A DNA stretch of 64,000 nt from Diplonema japonicum (Eukaryota > Protista > Euglenozoa: Diplonemea): assembly GCA_964019335.1 (NCBI GenBank), contig OZ025722.1, forward strand, positions 1 through 64,000, written 5' to 3'. Shown here piece after piece: positions 1-13,284 of the stretch. The position numbers and the translations under genes are program-made. Numbering within the stretch: the stretch's first letter is position 1; every line of letters begins with the position of its first letter. Under the pieces are notes generated by a model, which saw only the letters and a list, made by a program, of their open reading frames with translations, had not been told where the DNA came from and did no database searches.

Positions 1-165
1 GCGGGTTTGCGGGTTTGCGGGTTTGCGGGTTTGCGGGTTTGCGGGTTTGCGGGTTTGCGGGTTTGCGGGTTTGCGGGTTTGCGGGTTTGCGGGTTTGCGG
101 GTTTGCGGGTTTGCGGGTTTGCGGGTTTGCGGGTTTGCGGGTTTGCGGGTTTGCGGGTTTGCGGG
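1..165 (+). repeat. (GCGGGTTT)n 8-mer tandem array, telomere-like, G-rich strand pointing into the window
   Basis: 20 perfect GCGGGTTT units plus GCGGG; runs off the window start; a short recurrence lies at 473-491. Confidence 0.95.
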
Positions 166-420
166 TCATCAAGGAGCATCATCATCGACTCCTCCTCTCC
201 GACTGCATACTCGTAGTGGGTGCCGTTGTACGCCAGCACCACCACCTTCTCGTGGTCGGAGTTGTACTCCCCTATCATCAGGACTGGGTTGTTACCCCCA
301 GCAACCACGAGTATCGTGCGGCCAAACGCTTGTGCTGCGGCTGCCAGGCACAAGTGGTCTCCCCACGTCGCCGCTGTGCCCATCCCTTCCAAGTACCGGC
401 CCCAACCCTCGCTGCAAAAC

Positions 421-422
<2 letters not shown>
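166..422 (-). mobile_element. 257-bp duplicate of an internal (OTU-coding) segment of the adjacent retrotransposon
   Basis: Same orientation as 6525-6781, with 5 substitutions by manual alignment. Confidence 0.92.
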
Positions 423-472
<50 letters not shown>

Positions 473-498
473 CGGGTTTGCGGGTTTGGGGTTTTTTT

Positions 499-623
499 AA
501 AAAGGGGGACTTGAGAAAATAAATAAAAAGGGGGACTTGAGAAAATAAATAAAAAGGGGGACTTGAGAAAATAAATAAAAAGGGGGACTTGAGAAAATAA
601 ATAAAAAGGGGGACTTGAGAATG
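499..623. repeat. 26-bp tandem repeat (AAAAAGGGGGACTTGAGAAAATAAAT), about 4.8 copies
   Basis: Units start at 499, 525, 551, 577 and 603; T-tracts lie at 423-472 (T50), 492-498 (T7) and 624-643 (T20). Confidence 0.9.
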
Positions 624-1306
624 TTTTTTTTTTTTTTTTTTTTCTTCAAAAGACACACAAGGCACGATAAATCTTAAGAGAAAATAAAAATATTCCAAAA
701 CAGACAATCAAGTTCCAACCTGGGAGGAAGGCATGGGTTTCTCTTTTTCTTTATGGGAGGGAGAGGGGAAGAAGAAGAAGCAACTCCAAATGATAAAAAT
801 TCAAAAATAAAAATCTCAAAAAAGGCTTAAAAGAAGAAGAGGCAAATTCAAAAACATACTAGGGAGGAATGAGTGGGGCAGGGGGTAAAATTTAGGAGGG
901 GGAAAGAGGGAGAATCAAAAAAGGGGAAAGGGGCAGAGTGACCAATGTCCATGCGAAAAAGCATAGAGCGGGGGAAGAAGAAAATCAAAAACAGGAAAAA
1001 CACATCACCACACAAGAAAAAAGAAAAAAAAAAAAAAACGTCGACCGAGATGGTTCCACTTCAAAAAGAAAAAGAAAAAGAAAAACAGAAAAATAAAAAA
1101 AAAAAAAAAAAAAGAAAAACAAAAAGAAAAAAAAAAAAAAAGGAAAAAAAAAAAAAATCTAAGTGGTTCTATCTAGCCTGGCCGTTGTAGCACCTGTTCC
1201 TATTCTTTTATTTTTCCCTTTTTTTTTTCTCAGAAAAAAAAAAAAAAAAGTTTCACATCTTCCTATGGCGGGGGGGGGGAGAACAGCCCCCCACACCCCC
1301 GCTGGC

Positions 1307-4300
1307 CTATCTGGCCAGCGAGCCTTTGGACCTCTTCTTGTGGGGTATGGGCCCCACCCGTGCCCTCCCCGACTCGAGCTGCAGCCAAGCCACCGCACTG
1401 TTCACCGGGGCCCAGTTCTCCTTGTTGCGCACCTTGACCGTGTCCCGCACCAGGTCGTCGCTCCCCAGCTCTTCCATCAACCTGTGCTCCGCCAAGAACT
1501 TGAACTGGGGCCCGGTCATCCCCTTGAGCTCACCCCTGCATATGTTGGCTTCGACCACGGTGCCATCCGCCCCCGTACCCTTCAGATAGATGTAGCCACC
1601 CTCCACACAATCCGAGTCAGTACTGGCCGATCGGGCCCGGGCCCGCTTCTTGTCCTTCTTGCTCCACTTCAGCTCTTCCAGGGTGGGGAGGTCCGTGGCA
1701 ACCACCTCAGGCCGCCTCTCCCTGTCTTCCTCCTTCTTCCGGGCCAACAGCCCAAGGTACCTCTCAAAGGAGACGTCCTCGAACAACCCCGGGACCGTCA
1801 CCACCGCTGACTGCAGGTCGACCTCTTCAACACCCATCTTCCGCAGATGGTCCTGGACAGTGCGCCTCGTCTCCTTCTCGCAGGGCCCCCTCCCCTCGTA
1901 GACGTCGAGGGTGACCTTCCTTCCATCCCTCACCCACGCCTTCACTTTGATCAGGTCCTTGACCTTTCCCACTGGGGCCCTTATCCTTGCGTCGCACCTC
2001 TCCAAGAACTCACGTAGTGTCACCTTGGTAGCGCCGGCTCCCGCCGCAATGCCCACTACCCCTTCCTTCCCCGGTGTCGGGTGGTGTCTGCACCCCCGGG
2101 TCTGCAACTTGACCACCCTCCATGCCGTTTCCAGAGTCCCCTTGAGCACGCCACCCTTGAAACGAACAGGTTGCACCGCCGAACACCCACACGCGTACGT
2201 GATCTGGAAATCCTGGACCGTCCTCGGGAACTCGAACTCGCGGTATGTTTCCGACTTCTGCACCTCACAACCCACAATGCGGCTGCGGCGCTCTCCGTCC
2301 GACCCACCTTCCAAGCTTGCGAAGTACTGCTTTACCATCATGTATCCAAGTCCAGCGATACCAATCTGGCCAGCCATAGCCACCTCCAGTGGAACACCCA
2401 GCGACTCGGCCTTCGCAAGAAGCATCTCCTCAGTCCTCTCCCTTCCAGGGTCCGTTCCTTCTTCAAGGATGATCTCCACCCGGCCCTCGAACTGGATGAT
2501 GAACTTGAGCAGTCGGTCCCCCGGCCTCGCCCTCAGTGGCACCATCGCTCTCGGAATTGGGATGCCCATCACCACATCAATCGGGTCAAGCTGAACGAAG
2601 TCTCCCCCTACTTCCACCTGCTGTTCCCTTTCCGGTGCCCCGACTCCCATCAGCTGATCTCCCTCCGGCGTCTGGATCCCACCCCTAGGTGTGTCAGGCC
2701 CCGACTGGCTGCCTCCGCTCGGTGCGTTCCCGCCCTCTTTGGTCCCTTCGGGGGCGTCATCCGCCTGCGGCTTCAGAGTCCTCCCACCGCCCTGTCTCTT
2801 CGCAGCTTGTTCCCTACAGAATTCGCTCACGGTCATCTTCCTCGTAGCAGTTGTCGCACTCTGGTCCCCCTTGTTCGAGTCCCTCTGGGCCTCCGTATCC
2901 CCCTTAGGACACTGGTCCAAGGTCTGGTTCACCGCAGCGTCAGTCGCCCCTTGTCTCTTCCCATCTTCCTGGGCCTTCGGGTCAAGCTCCCCTCCCTGCC
3001 CAGCCCTCTCGCTGGATCCTGTTCCGACCATCTCCGTGTCTTCTCCTCCCGGCGAGGCTGCTTCGAGTCCTGCTCCCGCTTTCCCTTGTGTTCCACCCTC
3101 CACCGGTTCCGCCTTTCGCTGCTGCTGCATTCGGGCGTCCAGGTCCTTCTTCGTCTGCTCCAGAAGGGCATCCAGCTGGTGGGCCACCGTGATTGGGGGT
3201 CCGCCTCCCTGTCCCTTCACTTCCCTCTCGGACGACTCCTCAGCTTCGGTGGTTTTTTCATTGCCGAAGGAGTCCTCTGTGAGGTCAGTGTTGGATTCAG
3301 TGTTGGGTTCGTTGTTCGCTTCCTCGTTGTCCTTTTTTTCCTCTTCGCCGTCCGGTACCGGGGGCCCTGGATCCAACTGTACAGGCCCTTTGACTAACAG
3401 CGCCCCTGCTATCGATCTCATCATGGCCGTTGACACCTCTTGGACCACACGCCTGTGTATCGAGACTCTGTCCCCGTGAGCCCGCGCAGCTATGCTCCTG
3501 GACAGTTTCTTCGTGAGGTAGACTGCTGCCTCCCCGAACCCCCCAAAGGTCTCCATCGCGAAAGGTACAAAGGCCACGCGTGTCTTGGCGAGCTCCGCCT
3601 CATACTTCTGGCGCTTGTAGTGTTCCGCCTTCGCCGCTGCGTATCCCGCAGTCTTCGCCGCCTGGTTGACACAAGACTCGTTCCTCGGGTGCACGATGAC
3701 CACGTCCATAGCCATTGGGCGGGAACCCCCCACCCCACCTGGGAAGAACACGTCCGCCGGGCGCTGGGACGACCCCGGGATCAGCCCCGTCTTCTCCATC
3801 GTTGCGCTCACCCCGGCCCACTGACAGTGTCTGTGGATGGTCTCCTTCACCCGGTCGTGCCTCGCAATCCTGGCGTTGCCGCATCCCTGGGCATGGTCAC
3901 CCCATACGTCCATCCCCTCAGTCTTGCACCTCGGGTCGTGGCAGCTCTCACCCTGCTTGTAGACCGGAGCCCCCAACCACCACTTGATCAGAGCCCCAAA
4001 CTCGTTGTCCGACAGCTGGTTGTAGAAGTCAGGCGTCGCCGTCAACCACGCTCCCGCATAGTGCATTGACTCCGACATCAACCTCGCTCTCGAGCGTGCA
4101 TCTGCTTTCGCCAAGAGGTCCTCCAGCGCCTTCTCATCAAGCACCCTAGAGAGCCACCTCTGGCTGCAGATGTGGGGGGCCTTGGCCACCATGTCGGGTG
4201 TAATCTGCATGCCGCCCTTCGTCCTGTTGAACCACTCGAGCCAGCTCCCCCATACACCCCCTTCCAGCCCATGTTCGTATTTGGGATCCAGCTCCTTGCA

Positions 4301-7300
4301 CAGCTTCATCGTCGACGCCCTCGAAGCCATGTTGGCCGCGCGCAGGTGCTCCTGGCAGCTCCTCATCCCAAGCCCACCGACTTTTACGGACAGTTTCGCC
4401 TGCTGCCATTCTTTCGACCCGTTCTCGAACTGCATGCCGCACACCTTCGACATCGTCTTCCGCACCATCTCGTCGAACCTGTGCATGACCCCTCCCACAT
4501 GCGAGTCTGGGACCACTCTCATGTAAAACACCAGTTTGCTGTATGAGCTGCAATACCGGAGAAGTGTGTACCCTGTCTGCCTCCCCACCTTGGTCAGCAT
4601 GTCGAAGTTCTCTTCCAGCGCGTCCAAGCGTTTGTTCAGAAAGGCTTGCGTGTACTCCGGCGATCCTATCGGCGCCCCCAGGAGCATGAAGTTCCTCTCT
4701 TTGTGGAAATTCTCTTCTGTCAGGCCATCGAAGCCTGTGTCCTCCACTGTCTGGGGGAGGTCGCCACTAACCCATATGAGCTCGCACTTCTGGGGTTTCA
4801 CTTTCAGCCCTATCATTCCGCTCAGCTCACACAAGATGTTGTACGCCTTTCTCACTTCATCCACATTCCCCACAAGGACGCCATCGTCCAGGTAGAACTG
4901 GAGGATGTCCAGGTTGCAGTCTTCACTTATCTTGTTCACCAGGGGTTGGATGGCCAGAGAGAACAGCAGCGGTCCCATCGGGTCCCCCTGTTGCACCCCT
5001 TCCTGGGACTTAATCACCTTTCCGTTGTAGTATAATTGGGAGGGCACCCTGTAGCACCAATCGGCCCACGCATACAGCCCCGACGCTTGCTCATAGGCCT
5101 GTGAGCACAGCTGCCTCCGACAAACACTGTTGAAGGCGTTGGCGTAGTCGATCTTGAGGATCACCTTGTTTTCCTGCTTGTTGCCCCGTTCCCTGTCCAC
5201 ATACTGCCTGATGGTGTGTATAGCCGCCTCCATTCCAGCAGGGACCGATACCCCCACCTGGCCGCCTTTCTTCAGGTACGAAGAGGCCACTTCCGGAGCG
5301 ATCTTCTTCACAAGGGATTTCCCCACCAGCCGACGCAGCACATCCCCAACGGCTATGGGCCGCACGTCCCTGTCGTTCTTCTTGAGGGCCACAAGGTTCG
5401 CCCCTGCCATCAGCGGAGCCACCTCCCTAGGGGCCGTGCCTCTAGCTAATGCGTTGACTGCCCTCGTCACCGACATCAAACAGCCTTGAGACTCAAAAGC
5501 TCCGTCCACCGCGTCCTTGATGTGCTGGGCTCTCAGACCAGTCGGTCCCGCAGCAGTCCCCCTCGGGAAGTCCCTGATTGCGTCCAGCACTTCTTCTGGC
5601 AAGACTTCTACCGCTTCCTTCGTCTTCGCCGGGTTGTCCCATTGGGGGTGTAGTGGCTCTGGATGTTTGCTCTGCAGCGCTCTCCAGCAATCCTCATTGT
5701 CTTCCGCCAGCCCCTGGGCTACAAGCGCCGCGTTTCCTGCCGAGAACCTCCCTTTGCTGCACAGTTCCGTGGCCCTGGCGACCTTAGAGACCTCGTCGTT
5801 CTTAGGTTCCCCCTTCTCACCTGATTCCAGCTTATTCCAGAGGGCCATGTAATTTCCCTTCTCCCACTCCTCCAATCTGGCCTGGACACTCAGCTCCGTC
5901 TCCTTGTCCCGCTTCTTCCCTCCCCTCTTCTTCCACAGGCAGGCTTTGGGGAGCATCGCCACCAGCAGCCAAGCCTCCTCTGTGTTGTCCTTCACCGCCC
6001 GGCCCAGAGTGTGCTTAAGGGTAAGCCCCCACAGTCTTTGAAGGCTCGTCGGGATCGACCCCATGGTCGTGACGTTCATGGCGGCTATGGCTTCCAGGCT
6101 GGGTAACTCGGTCCTCGTCGGGGCCGGCGGGGGGGTCGTGTATTCCCCTTCCCTTCGCACCGCCTTTTTGCACTCGTCGTGGCACCCCTGACCCTTCCAC
6201 ACACAGCCCCTGCACACCAGGCACCTCTCGAGGTCCAGTCTCCTCAGAACGCTCTCCGGGATCTCATCACTCTCCAGGTGCCCATCCAGGTGACACTTCC
6301 ATACCCTTGTCGAGTTGAACGGGGTCGTGCTTTTGCACTTCGACCTAGCGCAGTTCGCCACCGGACAGTACAGGAATTGCTGGTTCCTTGCCCCCATCTG
6401 GTCCAACACCCCTGCCTTCCCGTATCCAGGGATCGCACGGTCTATTATGTCCCACTCCCCGATGTCCTCACCCGGGGCCTCGGAGGGTTGCTTACCTGCC
6501 TTTTGTAGAGCTACCGATTGGGACTCATCAAGGAGCATCATCATCGACTCCTCCTCTCCGACTGCATACTCGTAGTGGTTGCCGTTGTACGCCAGCACCA
6601 CCACCTTCTCGTGGTCGGAGTTGTACTCCCCTATCATCAGGACTGGGTTGTTCCCCCCAGCAACCACGAGTATCGTGCGGCCAAACGCTTGTGCTGCGGC
6701 TGCCAGGCACAAGTGGTCTCCCCACGTCGCTGCTGTGCCCATCCCTTCCAAGTACCGGTCCCAACCCTCACTGCAAAACGGGGCATAGTGCTCCTCCCGG
6801 TGTTTCATCCATTCTACAACCTCGCTCCTGATGTGGGTGTGGTCGCCGTAGGCTTCCCCGAGCGAACCGGCCAGGGCGTGGAACATGCAGTTCCCGTCCT
6901 TCTCCGTCGATCTCCTCGTCAGCTTGAAGCTCTTCATGATCTCGTCCACTGACTTGCCGGCCCTGGGTTGTTTGTCGGGGTTCCACAGATTCCGCTGCCT
7001 GTGTAGTGCACAGTGCGTCTGGTTCGACGAGCACGCCGCAGCACACGTTCCACAGAGGTTCACCTTCATGCTCCTCGCCTGCTCTTGTTTCACAAAATGA
7101 TGGTGGACCGCATTGAGGTGTTTAACTAGACAGCTTGCCACACTGGTGCGGAAAGAGCAGTCTTCCATCCGGCATTGATGTTTGTCTGATCCTTCTTTTT
7201 CCCCCTCCTTCTGCGCCTCCATGTGCTCATCATCCAAATCCATGGGGGGAGGGTCACCACCTCCTTGCAACGCGTCCCCTGCCAGCGTCAAGTCCGCAAA

Positions 7301-8179
7301 GGGGTCCAGGTGTTCGGCCTGAAAGAGCTTATCCTCCGTCTCAGCTCGTTCCTTCGCCGCTTGCTTGGCGTCCTCCTTCTTTTTTCTGCGTCTTGAGCTT
7401 CTAGGCGGGCCCAAGTACACCGGCCGGTAGTGACCTCTCGATCCGCGTCTTGTCTTCTTCAGCTTTACCGGTCCGAATCTCTGGGTCGGGCCAGCACCAG
7501 CTTTCCCCACCATCACTTCCACCATGGCCCAGAGCGACATCAGCCCCCCTATCCAAACTGAAGTGCTTCCCACCAGAGTGCCCCCTACCGCTAGCCAAGC
7601 GAGCTCCCCGGCGGACCATTCATCCCCTCGGGGCCCCACCTGTACCCTTGACCTGTGGGTGGTCCTCCTGTCGCTCCCCGGCCTCTTCCACAACACTGCC
7701 GCATGCAGGAAGGAGGGGGCCATCCCGATGCCCGCCCCCAGCACCTGCCTCACCCCTGGGATCAGCAAGAGGGAGACGGCGACCCAGGCCCACGCCCCCA
7801 GGTGCTCCCATCTCACCCCTTCCTTGCTGTGTCCCGTCCGTCTGCGGTGCCTCCTTGTGCCGGTTGCAGCCCCAGGTGCCGGGATTCTGGGTGCCAGGGG
7901 TTGGGCTCCAGGCGTTCCCACCTCGGTCCGCTTCAGCCCCATTGCAGGGTCATCTGGCTTCTGTTCCAGGGCGGCCTCGTGTTCCTCTCTGCGGGCCCTC
8001 CTCCTCCTCCCTTCTTTCCTCGCACGACGGTGCCTTTTCTTCTCCTGTCTGGCAGCCTCCCTCGCCCCCTCCCTCGCCTTGGTCCTCTTCTCCCGACGCC
8101 TCTGAAGGGCCGTTTCGCTCCTGTGCCTCCTCCTGTTCTTCTTCCGCTTGGGCGCTGGCTTAGGTTCCCTGCCACCCAT
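1307..8179 (-). CDS. Retrotransposon polyprotein: C2H2 zinc fingers, OTU cysteine protease, reverse transcriptase, restriction-like endonuclease, long C-terminal extension
   Basis: Uninterrupted ORF (GTG 8263, first ATG 8179). OTU: DGNCMFHAL...WGDHLCL...NHYE. RT: GPTGLR, RPIAVGD, KIDYANAFNS, GVQQGDPMGP, FYLDD, GGLG. RLE: CHDPRC...HAQGC, RHD, RPAD, MDVVI, KRQKY, PFAMETFGG. Confidence 0.95.
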   Translation of the reverse strand: MGGREPKPAPKRKKNRRRHRSETALQRRREKRTKAREGAREAARQEKKRHRRARKEGRRRRARREEHEAALEQKPDDPAMGLKRTEVGTPGAQPLAPRIPAPGAATGTRRHRRRTGHSKEGVRWEHLGAWAWVAVSLLLIPGVRQVLGAGIGMAPSFLHAAVLWKRPGSDRRTTHRSRVQVGPRGDEWSAGELAWLAVGGTLVGSTSVWIGGLMSLWAMVEVMVGKAGAGPTQRFGPVKLKKTRRGSRGHYRPVYLGPPRSSRRRKKKEDAKQAAKERAETEDKLFQAEHLDPFADLTLAGDALQGGGDPPPMDLDDEHMEAQKEGEKEGSDKHQCRMEDCSFRTSVASCLVKHLNAVHHHFVKQEQARSMKVNLCGTCAAACSSNQTHCALHRQRNLWNPDKQPRAGKSVDEIMKSFKLTRRSTEKDGNCMFHALAGSLGEAYGDHTHIRSEVVEWMKHREEHYAPFCSEGWDRYLEGMGTAATWGDHLCLAAAAQAFGRTILVVAGGNNPVLMIGEYNSDHEKVVVLAYNGNHYEYAVGEEESMMMLLDESQSVALQKAGKQPSEAPGEDIGEWDIIDRAIPGYGKAGVLDQMGARNQQFLYCPVANCARSKCKSTTPFNSTRVWKCHLDGHLESDEIPESVLRRLDLERCLVCRGCVWKGQGCHDECKKAVRREGEYTTPPPAPTRTELPSLEAIAAMNVTTMGSIPTSLQRLWGLTLKHTLGRAVKDNTEEAWLLVAMLPKACLWKKRGGKKRDKETELSVQARLEEWEKGNYMALWNKLESGEKGEPKNDEVSKVARATELCSKGRFSAGNAALVAQGLAEDNEDCWRALQSKHPEPLHPQWDNPAKTKEAVEVLPEEVLDAIRDFPRGTAAGPTGLRAQHIKDAVDGAFESQGCLMSVTRAVNALARGTAPREVAPLMAGANLVALKKNDRDVRPIAVGDVLRRLVGKSLVKKIAPEVASSYLKKGGQVGVSVPAGMEAAIHTIRQYVDRERGNKQENKVILKIDYANAFNSVCRRQLCSQAYEQASGLYAWADWCYRVPSQLYYNGKVIKSQEGVQQGDPMGPLLFSLAIQPLVNKISEDCNLDILQFYLDDGVLVGNVDEVRKAYNILCELSGMIGLKVKPQKCELIWVSGDLPQTVEDTGFDGLTEENFHKERNFMLLGAPIGSPEYTQAFLNKRLDALEENFDMLTKVGRQTGYTLLRYCSSYSKLVFYMRVVPDSHVGGVMHRFDEMVRKTMSKVCGMQFENGSKEWQQAKLSVKVGGLGMRSCQEHLRAANMASRASTMKLCKELDPKYEHGLEGGVWGSWLEWFNRTKGGMQITPDMVAKAPHICSQRWLSRVLDEKALEDLLAKADARSRARLMSESMHYAGAWLTATPDFYNQLSDNEFGALIKWWLGAPVYKQGESCHDPRCKTEGMDVWGDHAQGCGNARIARHDRVKETIHRHCQWAGVSATMEKTGLIPGSSQRPADVFFPGGVGGSRPMAMDVVIVHPRNESCVNQAAKTAGYAAAKAEHYKRQKYEAELAKTRVAFVPFAMETFGGFGEAAVYLTKKLSRSIAARAHGDRVSIHRRVVQEVSTAMMRSIAGALLVKGPVQLDPGPPVPDGEEEKKDNEEANNEPNTESNTDLTEDSFGNEKTTEAEESSEREVKGQGGGPPITVAHQLDALLEQTKKDLDARMQQQRKAEPVEGGTQGKAGAGLEAASPGGEDTEMVGTGSSERAGQGGELDPKAQEDGKRQGATDAAVNQTLDQCPKGDTEAQRDSNKGDQSATTATRKMTVSEFCREQAAKRQGGGRTLKPQADDAPEGTKEGGNAPSGGSQSGPDTPRGGIQTPEGDQLMGVGAPEREQQVEVGGDFVQLDPIDVVMGIPIPRAMVPLRARPGDRLLKFIIQFEGRVEIILEEGTDPGRERTEEMLLAKAESLGVPLEVAMAGQIGIAGLGYMMVKQYFASLEGGSDGERRSRIVGCEVQKSETYREFEFPRTVQDFQITYACGCSAVQPVRFKGGVLKGTLETAWRVVKLQTRGCRHHPTPGKEGVVGIAAGAGATKVTLREFLERCDARIRAPVGKVKDLIKVKAWVRDGRKVTLDVYEGRGPCEKETRRTVQDHLRKMGVEEVDLQSAVVTVPGLFEDVSFERYLGLLARKKEEDRERRPEVVATDLPTLEELKWSKKDKKRARARSASTDSDCVEGGYIYLKGTGADGTVVEANICRGELKGMTGPQFKFLAEHRLMEELGSDDLVRDTVKVRNKENWAPVNSAVAWLQLESGRARVGPIPHKKRSKGSLAR

Positions 8180-8399
8180 GGCAATCCAGGGGGCTCTTTT
8201 CTGTCTTCTCACAAGGGTGTGCAGTGGTGCTCTCACGTCGCCCGCAGCCTCCGCCCCAACCACACCTTGGCGGGCGGTGGGGGTGGGTGCTGGGTCCCCC
8301 TGGTTGTTTGAAAAGAAAAAAGGTTCCTCCTTGTTTGTTTTTTTTTTTTTCTTTCCCTTCCACCCTCAAAAAAAGCCCCCGGCCCTTGGGGACCAGGGT

Positions 8400-8870
8400 G
8401 TACACCTCCGTAGAGGGTCCAGAAAAAATGGGGGGCAGAGAGGGAGGGGCACTACCTTCTCTCGGGTGTGCTGTCTCTCCCTCTGCCTTTTTTTCCTCCG
8501 AAGAGGGTCTGTTTTTCACCTCCGTGGAGGGTCCCTCTGGAGAGGGCTCTATAAAAGAAAAAGGGGGGGACGAATGGGGGGGAGGAACACTACCCTCTCT
8601 CGGGAGTGCCACCTCTTCCCCTCTCTCTCTGTTTTCCTCCGAAGAGGGTCTGTTTTTTACCTCCGTGGAGGGTTCCTCTGGAGAGGGCTCTAAAAATGAA
8701 AAAGGGGGGGACAAATGGGGGGGAGGAGCACCACCCTCTCTCGGGAGTGCCACCTCTTCCCCTTTCTCTCTATTTTCCTCCGAAGAGGGTCTGTTTTCCT
8801 CCGAAGAGGGTTCTAAAAAAAAAAAGGGGGCGGGTGGGGCACTATCCTCTCTTGGGAGTGCCACCCCCCC
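8400..8870. repeat. 141-bp imperfect tandem repeats (about 3 copies) inside the retroelement 5' region
   Basis: CCTCCGAAGAGGGTCTG recurs at 8495, 8636 and 8777; an open frame 8160-9026(-) translates the 47-aa unit. Confidence 0.85.
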
Positions 8871-8890
8871 TTGCCCACAAAAAAGGGGAT

Positions 8891-9868
8891 CTAAAAAAGG
8901 GGGTTCGTTGTTAACCCAGGGGATGGGTCTTCCTGGGGTGTGCGGGTGAGCTTGGGGCCTACCGCACGCAGGGTGATCGACACCCTGACACCAGTGGACA
9001 TCCCGGACGGGATGTGGTGCGTCCACTGGTGTCTCGCTTCACCTTCCAACAGTGCCCATGAGAAGGGGGGCACCAGGTATCTCGCCACCCTGTCCCCCCT
9101 CCTCATGACCATTGTGGTCTCGGCTCCGTACGAGAGGACTAGGACAATCGGTCCCAGCCTCGCGTCGTCCTTGTGGGCGGCAATCCCACAACCAGACTTG
9201 TACTTGTTGACAAGTACCTGGTTGGGGACCACCTTGAGTCCTGCGGCGGCGGCCACCTCCCTCACCCACCCCTCCGCCCCCCCTGGGATCCCCGTGGTGG
9301 GGCGCACCTTGGCGTTCGTCCCCTCCCACCGGTACCCGTATTGGAGGGTCTCCCTCCCTGAGTTCCCAGACAGGGCCTCCCACTTTCCTGAAAGCAGGGC
9401 TTTCGGGAAGGCAGGGGCAGGGCCCGTCCTCAACCCGGGAGGGTGTTCACCATACACCAGTACCCACCCCTTTTTTTCTCCCTCTTTTCTTCCCTCTTCA
9501 ACAATAGCAGGGTCGGCTGCAGGGGTCGTGGTCGCGGCGGTCGTGGCTGCGGCAGGGGCGGCTGCGGCGGTCTCAGTTGCGGCGATCAGGGCGGCAGGGT
9601 CGGCTGCGGCGTTCAGGGCGGCTGGGGCGGCCGTGGCTGTAGCAGCGGCGGTCAAAACCGCGGTCTCTGCTAGTGATTTTTTTATTTTATTTTTTTTTTC
9701 TAAAGGGGGGTGGGGGGATCTAGGGGGTGGGGGTGGGGATTCATACTGCCCAACCAGATAGTCTGGTTGGGTCGGCCCTGGCGTCGTGTGCAGCCTGGCG
9801 GCCTGTCGGGGTTCCTTCTCCCTGCGGTTTGCGCGGTCACCTCCTCTTGCGTTCCGTCTTGGATCCAT
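8891..9868 (-). CDS. AlkB-family 2OG-Fe(II) dioxygenase with Pro/Ala-rich N-terminus (ORF1 of the retroelement)
   Basis: RETLQYGYRW; PNQVLVNKYKSGCGIAAHKD (NxY..HxD); LSYGAETTM; LLEGEARHQWTHHIP (distal His); RVSITLR (RxxxxxR). Confidence 0.88.
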   Translation of the reverse strand: MDPRRNARGGDRANRREKEPRQAARLHTTPGPTQPDYLVGQYESPPPPPRSPHPPLEKKNKIKKSLAETAVLTAAATATAAPAALNAAADPAALIAATETAAAAPAAATTAATTTPAADPAIVEEGRKEGEKKGWVLVYGEHPPGLRTGPAPAFPKALLSGKWEALSGNSGRETLQYGYRWEGTNAKVRPTTGIPGGAEGWVREVAAAAGLKVVPNQVLVNKYKSGCGIAAHKDDARLGPIVLVLSYGAETTMVMRRGDRVARYLVPPFSWALLEGEARHQWTHHIPSGMSTGVRVSITLRAVGPKLTRTPQEDPSPGLTTNPLF

Positions 9869-10040
9869 TTTTTATTTTTTTTATTTTTTTTTAAAGTGTG
9901 TGTTGGGGGAGGGGATCCTTTCGGTAAGCGGCGGGCAGGCCGACGGGCAAAACAACCCCCCCGGACGACGGCGACGACGGACGACGGACGCAGCAGCAAA
10001 CCCAGGCAGAGGCGGCAGGCACCAGCAGAACACGAACGAC

Positions 10041-10079
10041 CAATAAAGTACAGAAACTGTAGCTTTAGAATCGTTGGTT
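10041..10079 (-). ncRNA. Spliced-leader (mini-exon) sequence, exon only, ectopic copy
   Basis: AACCAACGATTCTAAAGCTACAGTTTCTGTACTTTATTG, 39 nt, with the euglenozoan SL core CAGTTTCTGTACTTTATTG and diplonemid-type AACCAACG start; followed by GT. Confidence 0.9.
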
Positions 10080-10263
10080 TTTTTTATTTTTTCATTTTCT
10101 TGTTAAGTTAGGGCAGCATTTAGTAGGGTTTGCAGGATATTTTTCATATTTTCCGCGCAGGACCCCGCCGGCAAGAAAGGGCCGGGCCGTATTGCATTGA
10201 AAGCCCTTTGCGTAAAAGATTTTTTTTCAAATCGTCTATATATAGACGCTCGTTGATAGATGG
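10080..10263 (-). mobile_element. Truncated left end of a piggyBac element
   Basis: Reverse complement of 13285-13461, with TIR CCATCTATCAACG and TTAA at 10264-10267. Confidence 0.9.
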
Positions 10264-10335
10264 TTAAAAATATTTTAATTAAAACTAAGGTACAAGGTAT
10301 AAAATAAAGGTATAGAAAATATAGTAAAGGAAAAT

Positions 10336-10526
10336 GGAAAAGGAAAAGGAAAAGGAAAAGGAAAAGGAAAAGGAAAAGGAAAAGGAAAAGGAAAAGGAAA
10401 AGGAAAAGGAAAAGGAAAAGGAAAAGGAAAAGGAAAAGGAAAAGGAAAAGGAAAAGGAAAAGGAAAAGGAAAAGGAAAAGGAAAAGGAAAAGGAAAAGGA
10501 AAAGGAAAAGGAAAAGGAAAAGGAAA
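10336..10526. repeat. (GGAAAA)n polypurine microsatellite, about 32 copies
   Basis: Perfect hexamer run. Confidence 0.95.
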
Positions 10527-11228
10527 GGTATAGATAGGTGCTGCCCAAAAAAGAGGGGGAGTCGCACAAAAAGCTCCCTTAACTCCGAAGAGTGGGTGTT
10601 TTTTTTTTAGTCCAAGATATAGATTTTGATTTTGATGTGGTTAGCGTATGAAGGTTGTTTTAGTGCCTGCCAACATCAAAAACAAAAAGATACTTTGAAT
10701 TAAAAAAAAACCTCTTTTCATTTTTTTGTTGTTGCTTTCTTTTTTTTGTTTTGTTTACTTTTTTTTTTCTACTTCGTATTCAGCAACGGTCACAACGAAA
10801 GCGGATACACAGCACAGGGGGGAACCACGCACACACCAGCTACCTTACCCCCTCCGACCATCAAGGCTTACCAAGGACAGGGCGAATGGGTAACAGGGCC
10901 CGCTCGGATGGACTTCGTGTAGGACCTTTGAAAATATTATTTTGGAGGTACCTTTATAAAAAGTGAAGCCTGTGATACAAAAAGGAAATAAAGAGATGAG
11001 ATAAAGGAGGTTCTTGTTTGGAACGTCCCTCCTTTGTCTCTACGTATCTCAAAAAAAAAAACAAGAAAAAGTATGATGGGACGAGAAATATGTTGGCTAC
11101 GACCCACCAAACAAAAAAGAATTTGCTTTAAAAAAAAAAAGAGAGAGAGAGGGAGAGGAAGAGGTTTGCAACCGGAGGTCAAAGTTCTTTCGGCTTTTTT
11201 TTTTTTTTTTTTTTTTTTTTTCTTTTTC

Positions 11229-11507: not shown

Positions 11508-13091
11508 CTAGTTGCCGATCTTCACGCACTCGGGTGCGTAGTGGCAAACAGACAGGCACCTGGCCCACCACTGGTTCTGCTGGTAACACGACAGCCCAGC
11601 CTCGCAGCAGTTAGGGTCCGAGAGGCACCCACCCCATGCACCGATCCTGCGGGCACAGCTGGCGTCCGAGGTGGGGACCGGTGTGGAGGCAGCAGGCTGA
11701 GGAGTTGGAGCGGGGGTGGGCTGAGGGGTAGGCATCGGAGTAGGGGCAGGGGTGCGAACAGTGGTATCGGGCTGAGGGGTAGGCATCGGAGTAGGAGCAG
11801 GAGTGCGGGCAGTTGTGGGAACCGGGGTGGAGGCGACGGTGGTGGGCACAGGGGTCGGCATCGGAGTAGGCATCGGGGTGGAGGCAGGAGGGGGGTTGTT
11901 CCCGTGGCTGCACCCCCTGGAAGGAGTGACGGTGGCGGAGACTGCCTGGGACCAGGCCCCGTTCCCGTCGTGGGCGGCAACCCAGAAGAAGGCCCCCCCG
12001 TTGCAGGCGTACTCCTTGTTCAGGTCCTCCATCACGCTGATGGCCTGCTGCGCGTTGCTGTTGGAGCCGGTGCCCCCGCAGTCGCTGATGCAGAAGCCGA
12101 AGACCACCTTCGTGGGGTCGTTCCCGAAGCAGTCTGTCACAAGAGTCTTGTAGTGCGCCAGGGCGGACTCGTGTACCCCGCCGTTGATCCCGTCCGAGTT
12201 GGGGCGCGTCACCCCGTTGTAGTACTGCGGCATGATGAAGTCCATGGAGCTCGCCACCTCCTTGATGACGTTGTAGTAGCCGGTCCCCTGCTTCATGTCG
12301 ATGTCCATCGGGGCGTGCGAGACCTCGCTCCCGGAGGGGAGGCTCTGCCTCAGCCCGACCGTCACGTCCCTCAGGAACTTCTGTGCCTGCGTCCCCTTCG
12401 CGAAGGAGGACCCCCTCTGCCCGTTCTCGTAGTAGTACTCGTAGTCGATGTCCACCCCGTCGAAGTTCTGGTCCCTCGCGATCTCCACCAGCTGCTGGAT
12501 CACGAAATCCTCCTTCCCGTAGCAGTACTCCCAGCAGTCGTCCAGCCCGTCCCAAGAGCCCCCCATCCCGGCGCCCCCGAAGGACAGGATCACCTTCTTC
12601 CCCGCTGCCCTCCACTTCTGCACGAGCGCCGGCTGAGGGGCGTTCCCACACACCGGCACAGGCGACGAGATCTGGCACTGCTGGTTGCAGGTGTTCTTCC
12701 CGGGGTTCCGGTTCCACGTGTAGGTCACCGCGAACGACACGAGCACGTGCGTGTAGGCGTTCATCTGCGCATCCGTGGGGCACGCCTGCCAGTTCCCGAC
12801 ATAGGCGATCATCCTGCTGTCCTCCTCTGCCTGCGCCGACGGTCCGGGCGGAGGGGTCGGGGGCGTCGGCGTCGGAGGGGGCGCCGGCACCGTGCCCCCC
12901 ATCGACGGGCACCACGTCGCCTGGTTCGACGTGCACACGCTCGCGCTGCCCCCGCCGGGGTAGCACGGCTCTGCCCACCCTGATTTGTAGCAAGGCTCGT
13001 TCCTGTTGATGCAGCGTTGGCAGTCTGCCACTGACTGCCCTGCCGCCCCTGCCGCAAGCAGCATCAACCCAAGCATCTTTAGTGTCTTCAT
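11508..13091 (-). CDS. Secreted GH18 chitinase with P/T linker and C-terminal CBM1-like Cys module
   Basis: Signal peptide [18 protein letters not shown]; KVILSFGG; FDGVDIDYE (DxxDxDxE); GAFFW; C-terminal WGGC...C..G..C...NQWWARC. Confidence 0.92.
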
Positions 13092-13284
13092 TATTATTTT
13101 CTTTTTTCGTGTGTATAAAAAACGTGTTGGGGGATACAAACAACCATTAATATGAACAACAACAAAAAATGGGAGGAATTTTTTTTTTTCATTTTTTTTC
13201 ACTCTGAACGCCTCTACAATATGAAAGTAAAGGAAAGAATGACAAAAAAAAAAAAAGAAGAAAAAAAACAACAAAAGAATTTAA

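Follow-up and report, generated by a model that had tools for sequence, protein, structure and literature searches.

A spliced-leader-headed retrotransposon family with predicted AlkB, OTU, reverse transcriptase and endonuclease domains at the chromosome ends of Diplonema japonicum

Organisation of the element at the end of contig C75

The window analysed here is the first 64 kb of contig C75 (GenBank OZ025722.1) of Diplonema japonicum, and searches were run against the 62.5-Mb, 132-contig assembly to which it belongs. A full-length element of approximately 9.66 kb was identified on the minus strand (10079-423); it is very likely a member of a LINE-like (non-LTR, lacking long terminal repeats) retrotransposon family which is headed by a spliced leader (SL), encodes AlkB, OTU, reverse transcriptase (RT) and restriction-like endonuclease (RLE) domains and resides in chromosome-terminal repeat arrays. 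An earlier note, made from the letters of the window, had listed an SL exon, an AlkB open reading frame (ORF), 141-bp repeats, an intact polyprotein and poly(A) on one strand, and all of these were found, in that order, on the minus strand. The span of 1-10267 which it had assigned to the element was too long, as positions 1-422 belong to a fragment of another copy and to the terminal repeat. Read along the minus strand, the order of parts is SL exon, AlkB, linker, zinc finger (ZnF), OTU, ZnF, RT, CCHC-RLE, tail, 3' untranslated region (UTR) and A-tail.

The first base of the element is the first base of a complete, 39-nt DNA copy of the SL exon (10041..10079), which matches the exon of the true SL RNA genes exactly. 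It is followed by a 5'UTR of 172 nt (9869..10040), which begins GTCGTTCG and is distinct from the SL intron, and then by an AlkB ORF of 325 amino acids (8891..9868) whose C-terminal 200 amino acids hold the domain (approximately 8966-9367; Pfam PF13532, 2OG-FeII_Oxy_2, E 2e-14). Between this ORF and the next lie 2.5 units of a 141-bp tandem repeat (8442..8797; 89% matches by Tandem Repeats Finder, TRF), which in copies where the two ORFs are fused encodes an acidic/proline-rich linker.

The polyprotein ORF (1307..8263; 2318 amino acids, first ATG at 8179) was divided up with Pfam and with motifs; the C2H2-like fingers and the YLDD, CCHC and RLE motifs were recognised in it by visual reading and with a script. 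Behind a basic N-terminal region it contains a first C2H2-like zinc finger (7097..7174; a motif in the translation, in a region that aligns with a divergent lineage on contig C24), an OTU domain (6563..6898, amino acids 456-561 of the large ORF; Pfam PF02338, E 4e-12) and a second zinc-finger region with a C2H2-like and a Cys-rich motif (6170..6367), also aligned with the C24 lineage. The RT domain follows (4772..5383, amino acids 961-1164; Pfam RVT_1, E 2e-16), with FYLDDG at 4880-4897, and then the script-located CCHC and RLE motifs (3692..3943; RHD..E..RPAD..D), which are kept in the C24 lineage and in Diplonema papillatum. The C-terminal tail of approximately 690 amino acids (1310..3388) is not conserved between lineages, and the alignable part shared with the C24 lineage and with D. 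papillatum ends near amino acid 1620. A Pfam search of the N-terminal 344 amino acids and of the tail returned no domain.

The 3'UTR is approximately 830 nt long (473..1306) and includes a T-rich tract (1063-1157) and 4.8 copies of a 26-bp repeat (498-621, TRF). It ends in A7 and two read-through telomere units, CCCGCAAA (490-473), after which comes a poly(A) tail of 50 nt (423..472). Beyond the tail lies an OTU-region fragment of another copy (167..420, minus strand, approximately 250 bp), recognised by its match to the OTU region of the element and by comparison with copy L007; it is truncated on both sides and directly capped by the terminal repeat, 21 units of an 8-mer reading (GCGGGTTT)n on the plus strand (1..166, TRF), with which the contig ends.

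The earlier note had treated AlkB as an ORF of its own, which holds for the window copy and fails for others. In the near-identical copy on contig C9, a single ORF of 2866 amino acids contains 2OG-FeII_Oxy_2, OTU and RVT_1; this copy has one 141-bp unit fewer and reads through in frame. Compared with it, the window copy shows a gap of one nucleotide near 8912, an A-run near 8345 lengthened by one A, and a further 141-bp unit, and it is these differences which leave its AlkB cut off from the polyprotein by stops. AlkB-spanning open frames of 2,350-3,005 amino acids were also found on C16, C31, C97, C58, C33 and C24, and the majority of intact copies encode one polyprotein of about 2,870-3,000 amino acids.

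Chromosome-end location and the spliced-leader head

At all left contig ends examined the plus strand reads (GGGTTTGC)n, with the complement at right ends. The same 8-mer in the same polarity was present at all ten other ends examined (C1, C3, C4, C5, C9, C13, C31, C40, C84 and C105), while on C118 it begins after 233 bp. A 40-mer of the repeat had 5287 perfect matches in the assembly, in which no TTAGGG arrays were found, and the terminal 8-mer repeat is presumed to be the telomere. A weak TERT-like gene was located at C41:533974-534300 (L049; Telomerase_RBD 28.4 bits, open frame of 1086 amino acids).

Searches of the assembly gave approximately 90 matches to the RT and approximately 120 to AlkB, of which 86 were strong. 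Of the strong AlkB matches, 77 are no more than 50 kb from a contig end and have the sense strand (3' end) outward, 70 of these being within 12 kb; the remainder comprise three near an end in the opposite orientation, four internal and two unplaced. L029 and L039, which are internal, adjoin repeat units as well. The family is found on most chromosome ends, where its arrays run head to tail and the 3' end faces the terminus.

The junctions tell the same story at nucleotide level. Seven other contig ends have the same 3'UTR joined to the terminal repeat by A7-A10 or by a 61-nt A-tail, the short form reading ..TTTTT A7-10 CCCGCAAA... Tails range from 7 to 61 nt among copies, one of them following two read-through telomere units; two copies truncated in the 3'UTR or the ORF are capped directly by the repeat, and in assembled contigs of the public sequencing run X1 the 3'UTR is joined to the repeat at eight or more different positions. 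On the 5' side, an interstitial repeat tract stands directly before the SL in L014, L018, L020, L023, L029 and L039, three of these junctions being in phase (CCCGCA joined to AACC). Copies therefore sit in or against the terminal repeat, in one orientation, and rarely elsewhere, and on the reading of these junctions the insertion target is the terminal (GGGTTTGC)n repeat and not the SL gene. The interstitial tracts of L014 and L020 also contain CCTGCAAA and CCCACAAA variants, which correspond to CpG to TpG/CpA changes and are consistent with cytosine methylation of the subtelomeric repeat.

So close an association with chromosome ends raises the prospect that the family has been domesticated for end maintenance in the manner of Drosophila HeT-A/TART, its arrays buffering or extending the ends and its RT perhaps helping to make the terminal repeat. 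The presence of elements at most ends, the re-capping of eroded copies and the non-canonical repeat of inverted polarity would all suit such a role. Set against these are the TERT-like gene, an outward 3' orientation which is the opposite of that expected from priming at the chromosome 3' end, and an intact RLE, which argues for endonuclease-dependent insertion; moreover, the survey of ends covered those that bear elements. Domestication was accordingly rated as distinctly unlikely.

The earlier note had placed the element with SLACS, CZAR, CRE1 and CRE2, kinetoplastid elements which target SL genes. The reading of an SL-gene insertion did not survive. The true SL RNA genes were located (L028, C15:778700-779900; L034, C59:512000-513161; L026; L031). 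They form repeats of 346-352 bp with which contigs C15 and C59 end, and there the SL array probably breaks the assembly. Each consists of a conserved promoter/upstream region, the exon, an intron beginning GTACCCAATC and a T-run. Downstream of the element's SL the sequence is GTCGTTCG in place of GTACCCAATC, and the upstream flank is not the SL promoter; it was different in each of the 27 junctions read, being unique DNA, a truncated copy, an A-tail or terminal repeat. Despite these unrelated flanks, copies start at SL nucleotide 1.

An SL-gene-targeting element of CRE/SLACS type, with its SL exon a remnant of the invaded SL RNA gene, would explain why the SL directly precedes the element and would agree with the habit of the known kinetoplastid CRE-group elements and with the automatic annotation of D. 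papillatum homologues as 'SLACS 132 kDa protein'. The insertion site of SLACS, CZAR and CRE is fixed within SL RNA genes, behind about nucleotide 11 of the exon, whereas here the complete 39-nt exon is present, its surroundings are not those of an SL gene, and copies lie at chromosome ends in the 8-mer context and not in the SL arrays. SL-gene insertion was rejected once the true SL RNA gene, with its other promoter and other intron, had been found, and as an account of this family it is now extremely improbable.

With up to two mismatches allowed, 207 copies of the SL exon sequence are present in the genome. In four copies (L020, L027, L037 and L039) the SL is followed by its own last 16 nt once more (TTTCTG..ATTG) and then by the 5'UTR; such relics are, from their sequence, the product expected of re-trans-splicing at the CAG inside the SL. 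In L012 the SL is joined after AAAG within the 5'UTR. Since copies start at SL nucleotide 1 behind varied flanks and relic SLs are present, the SL appears to derive from retroposed RNA and not from a target gene; a DNA-encoded SL outside SL genes, accompanied by relics, is the signature of SL-tagged retroposed RNA.

The junction between the SL 3' end and the 5'UTR was found 66 times, and the same 5'UTR start was not found after any other dinucleotide (n=0, both subfamilies). A search for both subfamilies likewise revealed no SL-less source copy of the 5'UTR in the assembly, and the SL would thus now be inherited as a 5' module. The first SL base varies among the 207 copies; 48 have A there, and in most of the 52 one-mismatch matches listed it is T, C or G. 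The cause may lie in the flank, in an untemplated addition or in the misreading of a modified base next to the cap. A scan for bacterial-type promoters and terminators around the SL gave nothing, a type of scan which is not applicable to this organism.

DNA-encoded SLs at the 5' end of retroposed mRNAs, along with truncated relics, are also known from dinoflagellates, where the encoded SL is re-trans-spliced at an AG inside it (PMC5585692, PMC6050394, PMC12014239), and the present family would be a euglenozoan counterpart of those relic-SL retrogenes. It differs from them in that the tag is carried by an autonomous retrotransposon, as well as by other euglenozoan retrocopies, and in that copies as a rule have a single SL, those with relics being in the minority. 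Unrelated sequences with a full DNA-encoded SL at the 5' end were also observed (L025, L032, L033, L035, L036, L037, L043 and L044, on C3, C52, C61, C85, C102, C44 and C27); several follow (ATT)n or T-runs, and L037 has a relic SL. SL-tagged retrocopies or further retroelement families seem to be common in this genome.

Copies, lineages and conservation of the AlkB and OTU domains

At least 17 near-full copies with 99-100% identity over 5-9 kb were recovered by the genome search. At the level of AlkB, at least four lineages could be distinguished (94-100, 81-88, 66-71 and 53-55% amino-acid identity), nearly all of them subtelomeric. The C24 lineage has 40% identity over the 1264 amino acids of ZnF-OTU-ZnF-RT-RLE and has kept AlkB, OTU, RT and RLE. 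Two tandem arrays of exact period were found, one of this divergent lineage with 3005-amino-acid open frames (C24:6,245-41,300; period 10,659 bp) and one of a shortened main-lineage unit (C99:344,894-357,928; period 6,021 bp). Elsewhere, units are joined head to tail either directly, the A-tail of one being followed by the SL of the next (L030 and L041), or through short repeat tracts (L014, L018, L020 and L023).

An internally deleted derivative of approximately 1.06 kb (L015; C9, about 10,050-11,013, minus strand) has the SL and 174 nt of 5'UTR joined to the final approximately 350 nt of the ORF and a portion of the 3'UTR; a full-length copy begins with its SL immediately behind it, and the derivative may be non-autonomous. 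As regards occurrence elsewhere, 31-mers from the 5' part of the element were found in public sequencing runs (X1-X18) under at least four organism codes, with a small share in a coral metagenome.

High identity between copies is what would be seen if the family now spread mainly as DNA, a few old insertions being multiplied by subtelomeric recombination, break-induced replication and gene conversion after retrotransposition had ceased or become rare. Copies on different contigs that are 99-100% identical over 7-9 kb, the arrays of exact period and a mosaic pattern, in which main-lineage RT regions share approximately 99% identity and the 5' modules attached to them 81-98%, can all be read in this way. 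The ends of the copies speak for RNA, however: in unrelated flanks, independent 5' junctions fall precisely on SL nucleotide 1, A-tails vary in length and one stands behind read-through telomere units, the deleted L015 is itself SL-headed, there are relic SLs, and the point of the 5'UTR to which the SL is joined differs. These RNA-level signatures, together with intact ORFs and the purifying selection on AlkB described below, make spread chiefly as DNA unlikely.

The AlkB region scores 54.6 bits against 2OG-FeII_Oxy_2 (cut-off 31.2), and its best PDB match was ALKBH8 (E 4e-10), with the iron ligands aligned. The HxD, distal H and RxSxTxR motifs are kept in all lineages, AHKDD, WTHHI and RVSITLR being invariant in three of them; the HxD...H triad, the RxxxxxR motif and the Pfam score together place the domain in the AlkB family. 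The AlkB ORF was intact in all 15 further copies fetched. Within the domain, the ratio of non-synonymous to synonymous substitution (dN/dS) was 0.23-0.27 at dS 0.33-0.98, while the 125 N-terminal amino acids of the ORF are low-complexity and variable, with dN/dS of 0.5-1.4. On these ratios, the AlkB domain is under purifying selection.

Outside the element clade, an exhaustive profile search of 1.84 billion representatives found no close AlkB homologue (best E 7e-20, none below 1e-30), and a word-based homologue search with the domain gave one weak match only. In a quick maximum-likelihood tree with the 157 best public AlkB matches, the four lineages of this genome and the element AlkBs of D. 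papillatum formed one clade (SH-aLRT 91), a topology which fits a single old acquisition. Relatives of AlkB that do not belong to elements were fused with an mRNA cap guanine-N7 methyltransferase (P0253) or with FtsJ and an N6/N4 methylase (P0245), or carried a weak OTU match (P0249); AlkB thus recurs beside cap/methylation enzymes and beside OTU in other contexts, which are probably viral.

The OTU domain scores 47.1 bits (Pfam cut-off 23.3). Its best PDB matches were OTUD5/OTUD3 (E 3e-6), with the catalytic Cys (DGNCMF) and His (NHYE) aligned, and nairovirus OTUs matched far more weakly; the DGxC cysteine, the histidine and the Pfam score are those of an OTU protease. Among public relatives of the polyprotein, UCH/USP stands after the RT in D. 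papillatum (P0123), ubiquitin occurs in a metagenome protein (P0130) and OTU in two further proteins (P0138 and P0122). Ubiquitin-related modules appear to have been recruited repeatedly among RT-RLE relatives.

Could AlkB and OTU be mere passengers, a captured host gene fragment or chance fusion without a role in the element's cycle? Most public RT-RLE relatives have neither domain, and in the window AlkB is a separate ORF cut off by stops, as a passenger might be. Yet the two domains keep the same order in lineages only 40% identical and in D. papillatum proteins, the element AlkBs form one clade, and a dN/dS of approximately 0.25 with intact catalytic residues contrasts with the freely evolving N-terminal part, the OTU Cys and His being kept as well. 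A passenger origin is very improbable on this evidence. The single-copy AlkB, absent from other full-length copies, which the earlier note had named as grounds for abandoning its view, was not what the genome contained: AlkB and OTU are integral and conserved, and travel with the RT across many copies and lineages.

Relatives of the family and a proposed insertion cycle

The RVT_1 match and the CCHC/RLE motifs downstream of it agree with the earlier assignment of the element to the non-LTR retrotransposons with RT and RLE. RT, CCHC and RLE in one ORF, with tails of A7-A61, are the marks of RLE-type elements (the R2/CRE/NeSL/R4/HERO supergroup). The best PDB matches of the RT were R2 proteins (E 7.5e-8), R2 being the one such group represented in PDB, and the nearest public RT-RLE proteins were unnamed metagenome, sponge and Symbiodinium proteins, with no named CRE, R2 or NeSL reference among the homologues; RVT_1 clusters in the protein atlas carried only 'hypothetical protein' labels.

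The layout recurs in three D. papillatum models (KAJ9442719.1, KAJ9464152.1 and KAJ9446222.1), in which AlkB, OTU and RT stand in the same order. The polyprotein has 34-39% identity to D. papillatum proteins (34% over 1353 amino acids for KAJ9442719.1), which together with the SL sequence points to a diplonemid-type euglenozoan, the homologues being automatically annotated as 'SLACS 132 kDa protein' or as tRNA methyltransferase. The D. papillatum genome paper mentions only 'SLACS reverse transcriptases' and 'a dozen AlkB-type genes' (PMC10161547). An annotation correction would follow, in which part of the dozen AlkB-type genes and of the 'tRNA methyltransferase' and 'SLACS' models are pieces of this element family. 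As to the earlier suggestion that no CRE element with this layout is known, a literature search for AlkB or OTU in a non-LTR element found no paper (Repbase was outside the search), while the layout itself has been lying unrecognised among the D. papillatum models in GenBank. The family is real and apparently an undescribed variant of telomere-targeting RLE retrotransposons and, within the literature searched, would be the first non-LTR family found with an AlkB-type demethylase in its polyprotein, paired there with a deubiquitinase-type protease.

Membership of the CRE clade is plausible, the one hint, an indirect one, being the automatic naming of the D. papillatum homologues after SLACS. 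Like the CRE group (SLACS, CZAR and CRE1/2; MoTeR, FoTeR and Cnl1), the element has one large ORF with N-terminal C2H2 fingers, RT, CCHC and a C-terminal PD-(D/E)XK endonuclease, and it shares their strict preference for a multicopy repeat. Its CCHC-RLE pattern is C-X4-C-X10-H-X3-C-X6-RHD-X19-E-X10-RPAD-X15-D (C-X2-C-X9 in the C24 lineage), and that published for CRE elements, including MoTeR, is C-X1-3-C-X7-8-H-X3-4-C-X9-10-RHD/N ... E ... R/KPD ... D/E (PMC12857005); residues and order are the same and the spacings differ. Fungal CRE members also occur in telomere repeats, in fixed orientation and in head-to-tail arrays (PMC12857005, PMC7367193). Unlike the CRE group, the present family lies outside SL genes and possesses AlkB, OTU and a DNA-encoded SL head, and it directs its 3' end toward the terminus, where MoTeR and FoTeR direct the 5' end (PMC12857005). 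It would on this account be a new telomere-targeting lineage with an orientation opposite to that of MoTeR and FoTeR.

Other systems share features with the family. The orchid Ty3/Gypsy LTR elements, which have an AlkB (m6A demethylase) domain in the polyprotein (PMC9289625), were the only retrotransposon precedent found, and their AlkB is of a different, independently acquired lineage. NeSL-1 and Utopia-1_TSP are RLE elements with an N-terminal Ulp1 protease (PMC4640811) and are thus likewise RLE non-LTR elements with a ubiquitin-like-modifier cysteine protease in the polyprotein; they differ in having Ulp1 in place of OTU and SL or U2 genes as targets, and in lacking AlkB.

The TRAS/SART elements of Bombyx are telomeric-repeat-specific LINEs of the R1 clade, with two ORFs and an AP-type (apurinic/apyrimidinic) endonuclease, inserted in one orientation with the A-tail abutting the repeat. 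Insertion into a telomeric repeat in one orientation is thus common to both, as is the direction of the 3' end toward the chromosome end in the case of SART, while TRAS/SART are not known to have AlkB, OTU or SL and differ in the type of endonuclease. Plant flexivirus replicases combine AlkB and an OTU/papain-like protease with an RNA-dependent RNA polymerase, a methyltransferase and a helicase. The element resembles them in that accessory AlkB and OTU stand ahead of the polymerase of an RNA-templated replicon; there is no sign of common descent, the element OTU being closest to the cellular OTUD5/OTUD3. Independent fixation of the same accessory pair in plant RNA viruses and in this family would point to nucleic-acid methylation and ubiquitin as barriers which hosts in general raise against RNA-templated replicons.

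A cycle can be proposed for the family as an SL-headed, telomere-repeat-dwelling retrotransposon. The element mRNA would be trans-spliced, and a full-length cDNA would at some point have fixed the SL as the 5' module. The RLE would nick the G-rich strand of the terminal repeat: as the cDNA continues that strand on its 3' side, the primer should be a 3'-OH in it, most simply one made by the RLE. The resulting ..GGGTTT-3' end could pair with the A-tail and prime reverse transcription. For 5' joining at the other end, help may come from the match of the SL's opening AACC to AAACCC of the repeat unit, a microhomology guidance suggested by the three in-phase junctions. Alternatively, the RT may jump to the next RNA and give tandem units, as the direct tail-to-SL joints suggest; end-to-end template jumping is known for the R2 RT. 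With 3' ends facing outward, erosion would remove 3' parts of an element and the repeat would re-cap what is left.

From their sequences, AlkB would probably demethylate the RNA or cDNA of the element itself by oxidation, and OTU would probably act as a deubiquitinase of element or host proteins, as a polyprotein-cutting protease, or both. The AlkB targets might be RT-blocking lesions (m1A/m3C type), m6A-type marks, or marks on or near the hypermethylated SL cap, any choice of substrate being a guess.

Several observations weigh against this picture of a competent, telomere-repeat-targeting retrotransposon. The element is known from DNA, and its transcription, start site and new trans-splicing are presumed; the activities of RLE, AlkB and OTU are predicted. 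An SL-carrying DNA copy would have to yield an RNA starting exactly at SL nucleotide 1, of which an internal or SL-borne initiator, or a processing step, could be the source. The polarity of the terminal repeat is the reverse of canonical, the strand ending 3' at the terminus being the C-rich (GCAAACCC)n. Target-site duplications are unreadable within the repeat, and subtelomeric recombination, not new insertion, could account for part of the 99-100% identity between ends. Finally, the window copy may be impaired, or its frame differences may be a homopolymer error of the assembly.

A bolder version of the cycle would have AlkB strip hypermethylated SL cap marks (cap-4-like, m6,6A or N3-methyl pyrimidine) so that the RT copies the SL to its first base, after which the SL AACC pairs with AAACCC of the repeat; with the inverted-polarity repeat, the family would then be a built-in structural component of diplonemid chromosome ends. 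This combination is speculative and, taken as a whole, improbable. With or without it, the family offers a system for studying telomere biology with a non-TTAGGG, polarity-inverted repeat.

Upstream of the element in the window, an (AAAGGA)33 microsatellite was observed at 10326-10526. Further inward, a GH18 (chitinase-like) gene at 11511-13274, on the same strand as the element, is the last ordinary gene before the chromosome end.

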